Shown one piece after another: positions 7,596-59,776 of a stretch of DNA of 63,917 bases. The DNA is from Octopus bimaculoides (lineage: Eukaryota). Both the position numbers and the translations under genes were made by a program. The DNA lies in NCBI RefSeq assembly GCF_001194135.2, contig NC_068984.1, positions 40,949,019 to 41,012,935 on the forward strand. Direction: 5' to 3'. Numbering within the stretch: the first letter of the stretch is position 1; each line of letters begins with the position of its first letter. Under the pieces are notes generated by a model. It was not told the DNA's origin. It saw nothing but the letters and a program-made list of their open reading frames with translations, and searched no databases.

Positions 7596-7715
7596 CTTTC
7601 CAGATTCCCTTTCGAAGTTAACAAATTCTGTTGTTGCTATTCTGTCTTCTGGTTTATCTGACCATGATTTGGCAGCAAAGCTTAGTGAAAAGGTAGTTCC
7701 TGTTGACACGAAAGC
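7596..7715 (-). CDS. CBFB: CBFB coding exon 3 (120 nt); gene continues left of the window
   Basis: tgcag|AFVSTGTTFSLSFAAKSWSDKPEDRIATTEFVNFERESGK|gttggt. It matches human AFVATGTNLSLQF...EYVDLEREAGK. Exon 4 was not found in 1-7595. Confidence 0.94.
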
Positions 7716-8103
7716 CTGCAAATTTTAAAAATTATCTTTTAATAAAAATGTCATCACATATAATCCTATTTTGAAAATAAATCTATAAGCACAAATTCTA
7801 TTTGCATAAATAGTCAGTGATTTCTTCAAACTTATGCAATTTTGACAATTTCTGAAAAAAAAAAAAAAAAAAAAATGGGAGGTAACGGCAAAAGAAATAG
7901 TACTTTCCCCATAGCCTAGATCATAAGGCTTTAGTTTAGAAATTAAATATATTTTCATATACAATTAATAGCATTTAAGACGATGATCTTTAATGATAGA
8001 TGATATACACGTATATCCTGATAGATCACTATCACAAAAAAGTGGGAGTGTAGGCTAGTTTAAATAAACTATGATCGCTGACAGTAGGAAATATTTTACT
8101 TAC

Positions 8104-8190
8104 TATATCAGCATGTCCTTCACGACATTCTGTTTGAAATCGAAGCTGTCGTTCTTCTTCAGGTTTATCACGGAATCCTGTATATTTTAT
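8104..8190 (-). CDS. CBFB: CBFB coding exon 2 (87 nt)
   Basis: ttag|IKYTGFRDKPEEERQLRFQTECREGHADI|gtaagt, phase 0 at both ends. It matches human IKYTGFRDRPHEERQARFQNACRDGRSEI. Confidence 0.96.
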
Positions 8191-8326
8191 CTAAAAATAA
8201 AATGAAAATAAAATAATAATAACCGATTAACTTAACTGAGTATCGGCATTTAAACTACGCAACTAGGTTCATTGAAAGGTGAAGAGAAAATTACTTCCGG
8301 GTAAATGAATACTATAACAAACTTAC

Positions 8327-8404
8327 CTCGCTTTCGTGACTAAGTTTCCGAAACAAATCATCGTGTTCGAATTTATCTCTTTGATCAGGAACAACTTTTG
8401 GCAT
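8327..8404 (-). CDS. CBFB: Core-binding factor beta, coding exon 1 (78 nt)
   Basis: The reverse strand reads ATG...MPKVVPDQRDKFEHDDLFRKLSHESE followed by the donor gtaagt (acttac at 8321-8326). It matches the human CBFB N-terminus MPRVVPDQRSKFENEEFFRKLSRECE. Confidence 0.96.
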
Positions 8405-9424
8405 CTTTGTAAGGAAACTGTGCGCTAGTTCACGAGACAACGTGTTTCCTACAAATGGTCGCATGCTTTCTCAGCCTACTTCATTCATCGTAAACCACAA
8501 CAAAGCTGGGATAGGTTTGGAATGATATCAAACTTTTTGATTGGCCCATTTCCTACCCTCATCAAACTTCTTACTTCGTCAAAACCGGCTATTGCCTTAT
8601 AAGGAAGTTTTCGTAAAGGAATTTACCGAAGCTTTCTAAGACGTCATTTGTTCTTCGATTAAACGAGTTGTTATGCAAATAATCGATACCAATAATATCT
8701 CAATGAGCCGCCCAAATGAGAAAAAGCGGAAAAAAAAATTGTTAGAAAATCTTGCCATTTTACATCCTCATTAAAACAGATTAGATTAATATCTTCATGA
8801 TTGGTCCACTTCTCACAGCATAACCCACACGCCCTTTAAATGATCGTATCGAATGTTGACAAATCATTTACCCCATGAAAACAAGGGAAGATTAACACTT
8901 ACAACACGTGAAGAAAATGAAAACAAAAAATATTTTTAATAAAATGTAAAAACAACAATCTTTCTTTTATAATTCTTCAAGGTTATATAACTAGCAGAAA
9001 GGCTTTATTAGTGGTTTTGAACAGTATTTAATTAATCACAATATACACTTTATATAAGTGTCAAATCGCGCATTACAAAATAATTGTAATTTTTCAAAGA
9101 ATATTGGTTTAAAAAATAAATATTAGAAAATTAATTTGACAATCTTTTTTAAAGTCAAATTTAGTTATTTTTTATCATTTATTTTATTTTATATATCTCT
9201 TTAATTAGCTTTATGACAGTTCCTTTATTACTTTATAGACGAAAGAAAGAAAAATGAAACGGAAGTCTAAGTGAGATTAGCACATGCGCAATATATAGGA
9301 AAACAAAAAATGGCGTATGGTGAATCTTAGGAGTACACCGATGGGTAAATCATGTCAGTTGTAGACTTTTATACCTAAGTTTACAAATAAAGACTTATAT
9401 TATTTGTTTCGAAACTGAGCAACC
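8405..9424. promoter_or_regulatory. Shared bidirectional promoter / 5' UTRs of CBFB and PHAF1
   Basis: It lies between divergent ATGs. Motifs: CCAAT boxes (ATTGG 8540 and 8800; CCAAT 8689), ETS CGGAAGT 9260, NRF1-like TGCGCA near 9285, YY1-like AAAATGGCG 9307, RUNX-type AAACCACA 8492. TSSs are not determinable from sequence. Confidence 0.7.
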
Positions 9425-9488
9425 ATGCTTGATCTCGAAGTTGTTCCTGAAAGATCTCTCGGAAACGAACAATGGGAGTTTATTTTGG
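9425..9488 (+). CDS. PHAF1: PHAF1/C16orf70 (UPF0183) coding exon 1 (64 nt)
   Basis: accATG start, [22 protein letters not shown]|gtgagt. It is nearly identical to the human PHAF1 N-terminus [22 protein letters not shown]. Confidence 0.96.
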
Positions 9489-57219: not shown

Positions 57220-57332
57220 ATCACCTCCACTACCAATCACATGTTTCCATGGAGACTGTTTTGTCGATTGTGTTGAAGTGCTGAGAGATTACAACTCTAC
57301 GAAAGGATTAAAGTTCATTCTTGTAACTGAAG
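57220..57332 (+). CDS. PHAF1: PHAF1 coding exon 8 (113 nt)
   Basis: tgcag|(K)SPPLPITCFHGDCFVDCVEVLRDYNSTKGLKFILVTE-G|gtgagg. Phases are consistent with both neighbouring exons. The human counterpart is [23 protein letters not shown]. Confidence 0.92.
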
Positions 57333-57644
57333 GTGAGGGACTTAGATTTAAAGTAGTGTTTTCCATTAAATATGTCCATTACTAGTGGGTTTATGTTGAC
57401 CAATAAATAAATAAATAAAGGAAAGAAATTCATTAAGAATGAAAATCAGACCTCAGTATGATCATGTTGAAAGCATTTACAAATAAATTAATACAGTACA
57501 GGGTGTTTGGGCTAAATTTGACAGTTTGCATAAAAGGTAAAGAAAACACAATATACCATCCAAAAATAAAAGTAATTGTAAAAGAAACAAAGATATCAAC
57601 CAGATTATGGCTGGGAGATAACAGTTTACTCAAAATAACTGCCC

Positions 57645-58135
57645 TTAGTTTCCACTACAGCCTCAAGATGGCTCTGGAACCTGGCACTGTGTTCCTCACT
57701 GTGTCCTCTGGAAGGTTTTCAAACACATCCTTGATCTTTATTTTTACAAGCAAAGTGGTTGGTTTCATTTTCAATCACACCCCACACATAGTAATCCATG
57801 GGATTACAATCAAGGGAATTAGGATGCCCAAAATCAGGGCTTGCTCAGTCATAGATACTCTCCGACAACTACTTCTGATCTTCCTGAAGGTACAGCAAAT
57901 AGCCAAATCCAGCTGCCTCACATATGGACTTCCAACAGCAACCCTTGCCAGCCAGAGATTGATTACAGTTTCCAACAACTTCACATAACCAACTGAATTG
58001 AGCCTAAGGCCCTGTTCAAAGGTGTGGTGATGAATTTCTGCTAGAAGATGCAGTTAGAAATGCTTGGTGTGTCCTTTCCTGCTGGCCAAGGCTTTGTAGT
58101 CTCCATTGCAGCTGTCTGTGTCACATTTTATAGCC
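57645..58135 (-). mobile_element. Decayed Tc1/mariner-superfamily transposase C-terminus
   Basis: The reverse strand gives GLRLNSVGYVKLLETVI, HPNSLDCNPMDYYVWGVIE and RFQSHLEAVVE with frameshifts. The SPDxNPxDY-type third acidic residue is D, as in DD37D/maT-like families (tentative). Confidence 0.82.
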
Positions 58136-58873
58136 TTTACAATGTTCACAGAGCACTGAGCAGCAGTCACAATCTTGGCATTTTGATACTTTTAACACAA
58201 TACAGGTAACTCTTTTCCAGTATTCAGTTGGCTTCCAGCTGTCCATGTCAGCTAATTTTTTCCCAACTGAAACTTAAATTATTATGCTCTCCAATGCTGT
58301 TTACTGTTTACCAATACATGAAGTTTTTCCTGAAAAAAGGAGATATAAAAAAAAATCATCAAATTTAGCTCAAGCATCCTGTTTAGCTTACTACAAATTT
58401 TGTTTACTTGTCTTACTTGTCTTAAATCATTATCAATTTACACCCTTTTTTTACATGCTGGCTTGAAATGGATGTGTCTCAGTCTCATTACATCATCTGA
58501 TACAAAACTAGAGCACTAGAGAAAACTGACCAAGTTAGTTGTACATGTCTTACAGTGTGAATTGGGTTGTACCACTGACACTATAGAAGTTGAATATAGC
58601 AGGAATAAAGATGTACTCTCCCCTTTATTAGTAATTATATGGCATTCTACCTTGATTGTACATTCCATCTTTGACACAGTTTCTATTGCTGGATACCTTT
58701 TCTATCACCATCCACTTTACACCATATAGTGAGTCCATTTTATGATACCACTAGCATTAGAGAGACAGTCTGGGACATAACTAAGGAGTCCCATCTTCCA
58801 TTTTATCAGTTCTTATTTAGACAAGTAGCCTATAATGCCACTTGTATAGTTCATGTTTCATTTATATGTTTCT

Positions 58874-59104
58874 TATTTCTTTATTGCCCACAAGGGGCTA
58901 AACACAGAGCGGACAAGCAAGAATAGACAAAGGGATCAAGTCGATTACATTGACCCCAGTGCGTAACTGGTACCTAATTTATCGACCCCGAAAGGATAAA
59001 AGACAAAGTCGACCTCAGCGGAATTTGAACTCAGGACATAACGGCAGACGAAATACCACTAAGCATTTCGGCCGGCGTGCTAACGTTTCTGCCAGCTCGC
59101 CGCC
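58874..59104 (-). mobile_element. SINE family B, full length, young
   Basis: The reverse strand starts GGCGGCGAGCTGGCAGAAACGTTAGCACGCCGG; CpGs are intact. Confidence 0.92.
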
Positions 59105-59699
59105 AATAATTTGTTTATATGCTTCTATAACCTGATACCCTACCTCATGCCAACAATTTTACACAGTATACTGGGTTCATTTTTTCATGGCATGGCACCA
59201 ACACTAGTGAGGTCACTCTGTAACTCACGAGATTAAAGTGCTTCTGAGCTTCAGAAATTGAATTTCCTTGGTTATAGCCATTTACCACATTTATTACATC
59301 TGATATAACATACATTTAAGAAGTTAAATGAATATTTCCTGAAAACTCTTAAATATTTCCAGATTACAACTTCTTCAGAATCAGAATGTGAAGAAATTGA
59401 AGCTAGTTATTGAGAACCAAAAATATCTGCAAGACAAAAGTAAAACTAGAAGTCTGTCAGATGTATTCTAGTTGTTTATTTGAATATTTGTAGCAATATA
59501 TGATTTAATAATGAGCATATACTTATTTTAGTCAGAAGCTGTAGCTATTTCAGGGAACTGTCATTAATGAGCTCCAGCATGGTCACAGCCTCTGTTTGCT
59601 TATTGTTGACAGAGATTTAAAAATACCGCAGTAGGGAGGTTGCTTTGATGATTTTAAATAAATGCAGTGTCATGTATATAACATTTGTCTTTTTGATAG

Positions 59700-59776
59700 G
59701 TAATGGTTCCAGCAAACTGTTAGACACAAGAAAGAAAACAGTAGACAGAATTGTTAGATTCTCAGATTCTTGTCAA
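59700..59776 (+). CDS. PHAF1: PHAF1 coding exon 9 (77 nt); gene continues
   Basis: gatag|(G)NGSSKLLDTRKKTVDRIVRFSDSCQ|gtaagt. The human counterpart ends ...VFERSVYFGDSCQ. Total spliced length is 729 nt with an open frame. Confidence 0.88.

Follow-up and report, generated by a model that had tools for sequence, protein, structure and literature searches.

CBFB and PHAF1 as head-to-head neighbours in Octopus bimaculoides: an ancient bilaterian gene pair and a possible passive constraint on its persistence

How long can two unrelated genes remain neighbours, and what would hold them together? The question is raised by a 63,917-nucleotide stretch of Octopus bimaculoides DNA (contig NC_068984.1, positions 40,949,019 to 41,012,935; the whole stretch is hereafter called the window, and positions are counted from its first letter), in which CBFB, encoding a RUNX cofactor, and PHAF1, encoding an autophagy (phagophore-assembly) factor, point away from each other. 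The original prediction for this locus held that the linkage may date to the protostome-deuterostome ancestor, that its orientation has switched relative to human, and that it would imply a regulatory constraint between the two genes. We find that the head-to-head layout was inherited from the bilaterian ancestor (in the simplest reading of its distribution) and kept in octopus, and we favour, with about even confidence, the explanation that it persists by a passive cis-regulatory constraint.

Layout of the pair and soundness of the assembly

The initiation codons of CBFB (A at 8404, reverse strand) and PHAF1 (A at 9425, forward strand) diverge and are separated by 1,020 bp, and on this point our exon models and coordinates agree exactly with what had been predicted. 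The three CBFB exons of the window (8404-8327, 8190-8104 and 7715-7596; GT-AG borders, all phase 0) splice to 95 amino acids, starting MPKVVPDQRDKFEHDDLFRKL, and the translation matches CBF_beta (PF02312, E=2.6e-38, model positions 1-93 of 167). On the opposite strand, nine PHAF1 exons (9425 to 59776) splice in frame to 248 amino acids, which match the Pfam family PHAF1 (PF03676, E=2.2e-83), are 100% identical to an O. sinensis protein (P0001) and agree in full with the PHAF1 proteins annotated in three Octopus species. Neither gene is complete in the window: CBFB exons 4-6 lie before its first letter, and PHAF1 continues past its last, the tenth exon in O. sinensis sitting 6.2 kb after the ninth. 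Human sequences served only as probes for exon placement; every model was then built anew from the window itself and compared with database proteins.

As the window is part of a gapped draft scaffold (eight runs of N), the adjacency might be suspected to be an artefact, arising from a scaffold misjoin between 8.4 and 9.4 kb or else from convergent origin. Against this, no N lies between the two ATGs. Five of the runs (at 19069, 23893, 34325, 37887 and 42565) all fall in PHAF1 intron 1, none falls in coding sequence, PHAF1 exon 1 leaves and exon 2 enters in phase 1, and no reading frame crosses a gap. A collinear chain of 74 blocks (mean identity 90.4%) ties the window (184 to 62188) to a region of O. 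sinensis CM016862.1 that is gap-free (no N), and it spans all five intron-1 gaps in order and orientation (comparable distances, 136 vs 178, 318 vs 1186, 138 vs 243, -9 vs 70 and 625 vs 702 bp). The window is ~10% diverged from this region, and positions 6958-10524, which hold both ATGs, form a single ungapped block of 90.6% identity, so that a misjoin is excluded by an independently assembled sister species. The same arrangement recurs in four other phyla or classes (see below), and with the O. sinensis collinearity and the identical layout in amphioxus, Lingula and chiton, misjoin and convergent origin were both ruled out; we give them next to no credence.

Phylogenetic spread and ancestral orientation

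We surveyed contigs carrying PHAF1 orthologues, reading the neighbouring genes and checking CBFB exons by tblastn, in a sample that held one cnidarian and one ecdysozoan. Used as a homologue query, the 95-amino-acid CBFB fragment gave four short matches only, and CBFB homologues were found instead with a profile of CBFB fragments taken from the fetched loci. Besides O. bimaculoides, the head-to-head layout was read directly in O. sinensis (CBF_beta on the reverse and PHAF1 on the forward strand; ATGs at 8919 and 10001 of the locus, 1,081 bp), the brachiopod Lingula anatina (6851 and 10001; 3,149 bp), the cephalochordate Branchiostoma lanceolatum (6580 and 10001; 3,420 bp) and the chiton Liolophura sinensis (3937 and 10001; 6,063 bp). 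Read in two Octopus species, Liolophura, Lingula and Branchiostoma, the linkage predates the protostome-deuterostome split, as had been proposed. In the spotted gar the two genes stand in tandem, CBFB (+) ending 4.7 kb before PHAF1 (+), and we take the human genes to be in same-strand tandem as well.

Adjacency was also read from consecutive submitter protein numbers or locus tags, that is, from file order, which gives no orientation. By this measure the genes are adjacent in the annelid Owenia fusiformis (CAH1780529 and CAH1780530), the gastropod Lymnaea stagnalis (CAL1539381 and CAL1539382), the unionid bivalves Sinanodonta woodiana (ACJMK2_009213 and _009214) and Potamilus streckersoni (CHS0354_003555 and _003556), and Argonauta hians (GAB1600713 and GAB1600714). 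Accession order offers weaker hints of adjacency in Argopecten irradians, Haliotis rufescens and Nucella; RefSeq XP numbers were admitted only when exactly consecutive, and then as weak positive evidence (Argopecten and Haliotis rufescens). The distance between XP numbers was dropped as negative evidence of position, adjacent O. sinensis genes differing by ~620 numbers.

The other (3') neighbour of PHAF1 provides an internal control: it differs in all seven lineages where it was seen, being a WD40 protein, a fucokinase-like protein, PhyH, a galactosyltransferase, PAC4, an Inhibitor_I9 protein or a 2,440-residue protein. The adjacency of the human genes at 16q22.1 is borne out by a recurrent 43-kb deletion there that is listed as 'CBFB, C16orf70' (PMC5814226).

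The orientation switch is thus real as a difference from vertebrates (the gar genes are in tandem), with a correction as to polarity: since the tandem of the gar stands against head-to-head layouts in chiton, Lingula, amphioxus and octopus, it was the vertebrate lineage that made the switch, and the octopus kept the old layout. The simplest reading is that head-to-head is the ancestral bilaterian state and the vertebrate tandem derived, one gene having been inverted on the vertebrate stem, and that the ancestral pair was lost several times (the species concerned are considered with the reasons for retention, below). The single cnidarian sampled (Actinostola) lends no support to a pre-bilaterian origin, and Ecdysozoa are represented by one negative species. 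The further expectation, that the linkage had survived in a heavily rearranged lineage, was borne out as well, the pair having been kept in coleoids through their genome reorganisation (PMC9023564).

In their catalogue of conserved ancestral microsyntenic pairs (CAMPs), Irimia et al. (2012) listed 595 non-paralogous pairs found in at least 4 of 11 metazoan lineages, 593 of which date to the bilaterian ancestor, and found 5'-5' pairs to be the commonest class, the one least prone to change orientation and the most closely spaced (PMC3514665). CBFB and PHAF1 are non-paralogues (PF02312 CBF_beta versus PF03676 PHAF1) and are adjacent in at least four metazoan lineages (directly in Mollusca, Brachiopoda, Cephalochordata and Vertebrata, and by accession order in Annelida), so the pair would very likely be in that list. 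Like the 5'-5' CAMPs (e.g., HSPE1-HSPD1), it joins unrelated genes that have been adjacent in several lineages since at least the bilaterian ancestor, and it resembles them in divergence, short spacing and raised intergenic conservation (PMC3514665). It differs in that its vertebrate orientation is not conserved and its promoters look autonomous rather than singly shared; moreover, the products of HSPE1 and HSPD1 work together, whereas no such tie is known for CBFB and PHAF1.

The pair is an individually undescribed member of this known class. The statement that it had not been described stands insofar as no searchable paper names CBFB-PHAF1 as a synteny (a search to which the supplementary list of Irimia et al. 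2012 was not open), but the class itself has been described since 2012 (PMC3514665). Schmidbaur et al. (2022) reported 275 ancestral blocks retained in a squid, with clusters of fewer than three genes excluded from some analyses (PMC9023564); CBFB-PHAF1 is likewise an ancestral linkage that survived coleoid reorganisation, and as a two-gene pair it may fall outside their scope. A gene-name search of the Schmidbaur 2022 and Robert 2022 supplements returned no match for the pair, which is uninformative, as these files may use gene identifiers.

What is gained is a clean, well-documented addition to the catalogue of ancient gene pairs, one with a fixed polarity (head-to-head ancestral, vertebrate tandem derived) and with a two-gene linkage that outlived large-scale coleoid genome reorganisation. 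It also has a bearing on human genetics: in inv(16) leukaemia, 3' CBFB and C16orf70/PHAF1 are removed jointly by recurrent 16q22 deletions (PMC5814226); in some of these leukaemias, the loss of CBFB sequence thus extends to PHAF1, its direct 3' neighbour.

Several loci of the survey carried peculiarities of their own. In the shark Chiloscyllium punctatum, a 202-residue CBFB protein (P0213) bears the RefSeq name 'phagosome assembly factor 1 isoform X3'; the likely cause is a gene model that reads through from CBFB into PHAF1, which would fit a tandem in vertebrates. Potamilus streckersoni has two consecutive CBF-beta-like models (P0249-P0252; CHS0354_003554, named 'big brother', 290 amino acids, and _003555) beside PHAF1 (_003556); CBFB has either been duplicated locally or been split between two models. 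The Pecten maximus locus has two copies of PHAF1 exon 1 (6427-6490 and 10001-10064 of the locus) with at least 300 bp of upstream promoter, identical and 3,574 bp apart, which points to either a local tandem duplication or an assembly artefact. Further out, a fucokinase-like gene was seen in Lingula (39093-40948 of the locus) and BBS2 in the gar (27649-30710 of the locus). Human FCSK and BBS2 also lie on 16q, which would fit a larger conserved linkage group around CBFB-PHAF1.

The interval between the starts and the persistence of the pair

The 1,020-bp interval between the two ATGs (8405..9424) is 96.5% identical between the two Octopus species, compared with 97.5-100% for exons and 90.2-93.3% for flanking introns (Fisher p = 6e-8). 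Its observed/expected (o/e) CpG ratio is 1.11, versus 0.30 for the whole window. It lies in the only CpG-undepleted domain of the window (7800..12200; CpG o/e of 1.0-1.3 in 600-bp steps versus a median of 0.21), which takes in both starts, the first two CBFB exons and the beginning of PHAF1 intron 1, and which probably represents one shared germline-unmethylated island.

Within the interval, two groups of promoter-type motifs were recognized. The CBFB-proximal cluster (8538..8646, reverse strand) consists of a CCAAT box (8538-8546), a CArG box (CCTTATAAGG, 8595-8604) and a cAMP-response-element (CRE) half-site (8641-8646), at -142, -200 and -242, respectively, from the canonical ATG. All three recur in CBFB sense in Octopus (the window and O. 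sinensis), Lingula, amphioxus and chiton, the CRE half-site at -175 to -243, the CArG box (CC[AT]6GG) at -185 to -236 and the CCAAT box (RRCCAATSR) at -126 to -166, though each would be expected only 0.02-0.14 times per 300 bp (0.005-0.14 for each motif across both groups). The PHAF1-proximal cluster (9259..9315, forward strand) holds an ETS-type site (ACGGAAGT, 9259-9266), an NRF1-like site (ACATGCGC, 9282-9289) and a YY1-like site (AAATGGCG, 9308-9315), at -166, -143 and -117 from the ATG. Octopus, Lingula, amphioxus and Ptychodera carry the whole set between -112 and -232 (the NRF1-like motif as GCGCATGC and the YY1-like motif as AAATGGCG), and parts of it are found in chiton, Pecten, Pycnogonum and Actinostola; it is therefore kept even where CBFB is no neighbour (Ptychodera and, in part, Pecten, Pycnogonum and Actinostola).

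CCAAT/NF-Y, ETS/GABP-type, NRF1-like and YY1-like motifs are typical of bidirectional promoters. Unlike in such promoters, the motifs of this interval are split into two gene-specific clusters that never mix, with ~0.6 kb between them in Octopus and ~3-6 kb in the other phyla. Because the sets stay separate and that of PHAF1 also occurs in genomes where CBFB lies elsewhere, we infer two autonomous promoters placed back to back, rather than one that is shared. These motif grammars, recognizable from molluscs to amphioxus at near-fixed distances from the ATG, may prove more useful than the synteny itself, as candidate drivers of these broadly expressed genes.

The favoured explanation, passive constraint, builds on this arrangement. 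Each gene would have its own compact proximal promoter (CRE half-site, CArG and CCAAT for CBFB; ETS, NRF1 and YY1 types for PHAF1), the two lying back to back ~0.6 kb apart in octopus and inside one CpG-undepleted domain. The linkage would most likely persist because the interval between the starts is short and dense with function, so that separating breakpoints would be rare or harmful, any such break damaging one of the promoters. The constraint would be passive and joint working of the two proteins would not be required; on the vertebrate stem, the inversion of one gene would have produced the CBFB-then-PHAF1 tandem of gar and human.

Short divergent intervals call to mind the bidirectional promoters of mammals, defined by divergent genes whose start sites are separated by less than 1 kb (Adachi and Lieber 2002, cited in PMC3514665). 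The octopus genes share the divergent 5'-5' orientation, with ATGs 1,020 bp apart (960 bp when counted from an upstream CBFB ATG at 8464), and their start sites are probably within 1 kb of each other; in Lingula, amphioxus and chiton the ATGs are 3.1-6.1 kb apart. Active co-regulation, by a true bidirectional promoter or by shared elements selected for coordinated expression, would account for the divergence seen in all five invertebrate lineages read directly, for an ATG-to-ATG distance of ~1 kb in octopus, for the conservation of the entire interval (middle included) above that of introns and for the single CpG-undepleted domain over both starts, and co-expression is on average higher in conserved 5'-5' pairs (PMC3514665). 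It fits poorly with two motif sets that do not mix, with the PHAF1 set kept without an adjoining CBFB in Ptychodera, Pecten, Pycnogonum and partly Actinostola, with a spacing that varies six-fold between phyla, and with vertebrates having lost the divergent layout while keeping both genes. We consider it rather unlikely, though it comes next after passive constraint among the possible explanations; if true, it would tie RUNX/CBF-beta activity functionally to PHAF1-dependent autophagy. Bolder and quite improbable is the proposal of a co-regulated unit, selected since the bilaterian ancestor, in which a shared unmethylated divergent-promoter domain with grammars more than 550 million years old would couple the dosage of a RUNX cofactor to that of a phagophore factor; the 16q22 deletions of inv(16) leukaemia would then hit two functionally linked genes.

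A third possibility, ranked after active co-regulation and unlikely by a little more, is neutral retention, in which a short interval is simply a small target for breakpoints and adjacency survives by chance, with no selection. The distribution is indeed patchy, scallops being split between Argopecten (likely adjacent, with consecutive RefSeq numbers) and Pecten (separated). Where separated, the genes are still on the same chromosome: identical record lengths place CBFB and PHAF1 on one chromosome or scaffold in every species listing both, Pecten and Ptychodera included. Slowly rearranging genomes (amphioxus, Lottia) moreover keep most ancestral pairs (PMC3514665). Chance accords less well with the retention of the pair in the extensively rearranged genomes of coleoid cephalopods (PMC9023564), with the other neighbour of PHAF1 never being conserved, and with an octopus interval that stayed at 1 kb, under visible sequence constraint, while the adjacent intron grew to 39-50 kb.

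That same intron raises the last of the possible explanations, a genomic regulatory block, in which CBFB enhancers would lie in PHAF1 introns, PHAF1 being a bystander, and adjacency would be kept in any orientation. The linkage does hold regardless of orientation (head-to-head in invertebrates, tandem in gar) and outlived the vertebrate switch, the intron beside the CBFB promoter is very large in Octopus, and RUNX loci show ancient linkages of this kind, e.g., Runt/RUNX2-SUPT3H (PMC3974841), with which CBFB-PHAF1 shares the age of a RUNX/CBF-system linkage. By contrast with that block, a comparison of the human and elephant-shark CBFB loci found no conserved non-coding elements (PMC3974841). 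Furthermore, Lingula, Ptychodera and amphioxus have a PHAF1 intron 1 of 1.8-9.6 kb, against 39-50 kb in Octopus, and that of Actinostola is tiny; because it is small in all of these, the octopus intron looks like genome expansion. We regard a regulatory block as very unlikely.

Several observations weigh against the favoured combination of ancestral linkage and passive constraint. CBFB was not found within 10 kb of PHAF1 in Pecten maximus, Ptychodera flava, Pycnogonum litorale and Actinostola; its place is taken by an unknown 327-residue protein in Pecten maximus and by a PIP49-family gene in Ptychodera flava. Together with the vertebrate inversion, these four species make clear that separation or rearrangement is tolerated. 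The distance of ~3-6 kb between the clusters in Lingula, amphioxus and chiton leaves room for harmless breakpoints and suggests a weaker constraint there. Adjacency in five of the species is inferred from accession order, which does not give the strand, and the promoters and the unmethylated domain are read from sequence alone.

The part of the original prediction that the evidence does not bear out is the regulatory constraint that the linkage was said to imply for a RUNX cofactor and an autophagy factor. The genes do not lie within 10 kb of each other in the four species just named, vertebrates broke the head-to-head layout, and the motif sets are separate, that of PHAF1 persisting without its neighbour. 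A shared regulatory need of CBFB and PHAF1 remains a plausible hypothesis; a functional tie between RUNX signalling and autophagy is not demonstrated by the linkage as such and, on the promoter evidence, would not be required.

Gene models and minor features of the window

On the reverse strand, the coding part of CBFB exon 1 (MPKVVPDQRDKFEHDDLFRKLSHESE) occupies 8327..8404 and is followed by the donor gtaagt; exon 2 (IKYTGFRDKPEEERQLRFQTECREGHADI) lies at 8104..8190, with AG/GT borders in phase 0, and exon 3 (AFVSTGTTF...FERESGK; 7596..7715), the last CBFB exon in the window, is 100% identical to residues 76-115 of the O. bimaculoides protein P0280. The residues AFVSTG, common to the window and P0280, read AFVATG in O. 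sinensis.

An in-frame ATG occurs 60 nt upstream of 8404, at 8464, and would add a 20-residue extension (MRPFVGNTLSRELAHSFLTK; 8405-8464, reverse strand) to CBFB. It is used by the NCBI octopus CBFB models, according to which the ATG-to-ATG distance would be 960 bp. The extension is absent in amphioxus, Lingula and chiton, which have in common the MPK/RVV N-terminus that begins at 8404, and the human N-terminus is, we assume, of this type too. As a conserved CCAAT box sits only ~80 nt upstream of the 8464 ATG, the extension may lie at or near the 5' end of the mRNA.

CBFB intron 3 contains, on the forward strand (2458-2886), a 142-residue open reading frame (ORF) ending in ...FGFVPGKSTTDAIFLVK and resembling the start of a reverse transcriptase of the long interspersed nuclear element (LINE) type, although it has no Pfam match at E<0.01. 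The region around it (2-6 kb) has raised GC (0.40) and a strong AT skew.

All PHAF1 features are on the forward strand. The coding part of exon 1 (9425..9488; 21 amino acids and 1 nt, phase 1 out) is followed by the 39.3-kb intron 1 (9489..48810), with its five N gaps, and by exon 2 (48811..48893, phase 1 in), exon 3 (50748..50831), a 44-nt exon 4 (IIEVFCMNKVKLKY; 52213..52256) missed by the first tblastn, exon 5 (52693..52772), exon 6 (54501..54580), exon 7 (55843..55961), exon 8 (57220..57332) and exon 9 (59700..59776), which ends ...RFSDSCQ and is the last in the window. Exon 7 has two acceptors 15 nt apart (55843 and 55858), the second of which drops VFSKP and corresponds to the 424- rather than the 429-residue annotated isoform. 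An ORF scan of intron 1 found no nested gene, the only N-free ORF of at least 130 amino acids being of low complexity, and an Rfam scan of the window gave no family at gathering threshold.

Dinucleotide repeats are a usual cause of gaps in short-read assemblies. The N runs at 1785 and 19069 are flanked on both sides by (TA)n-like sequence and the run at 42565 by (CT)n on one side and (TA)n on the other, which is more in keeping with assemblies that broke at microsatellites than with a loss of unique sequence. Two further repeats were noted towards the start of the window, a (CAGA)n array with a 28-nt higher-order unit (1-336) and an (AG)63 microsatellite (5812-5938).

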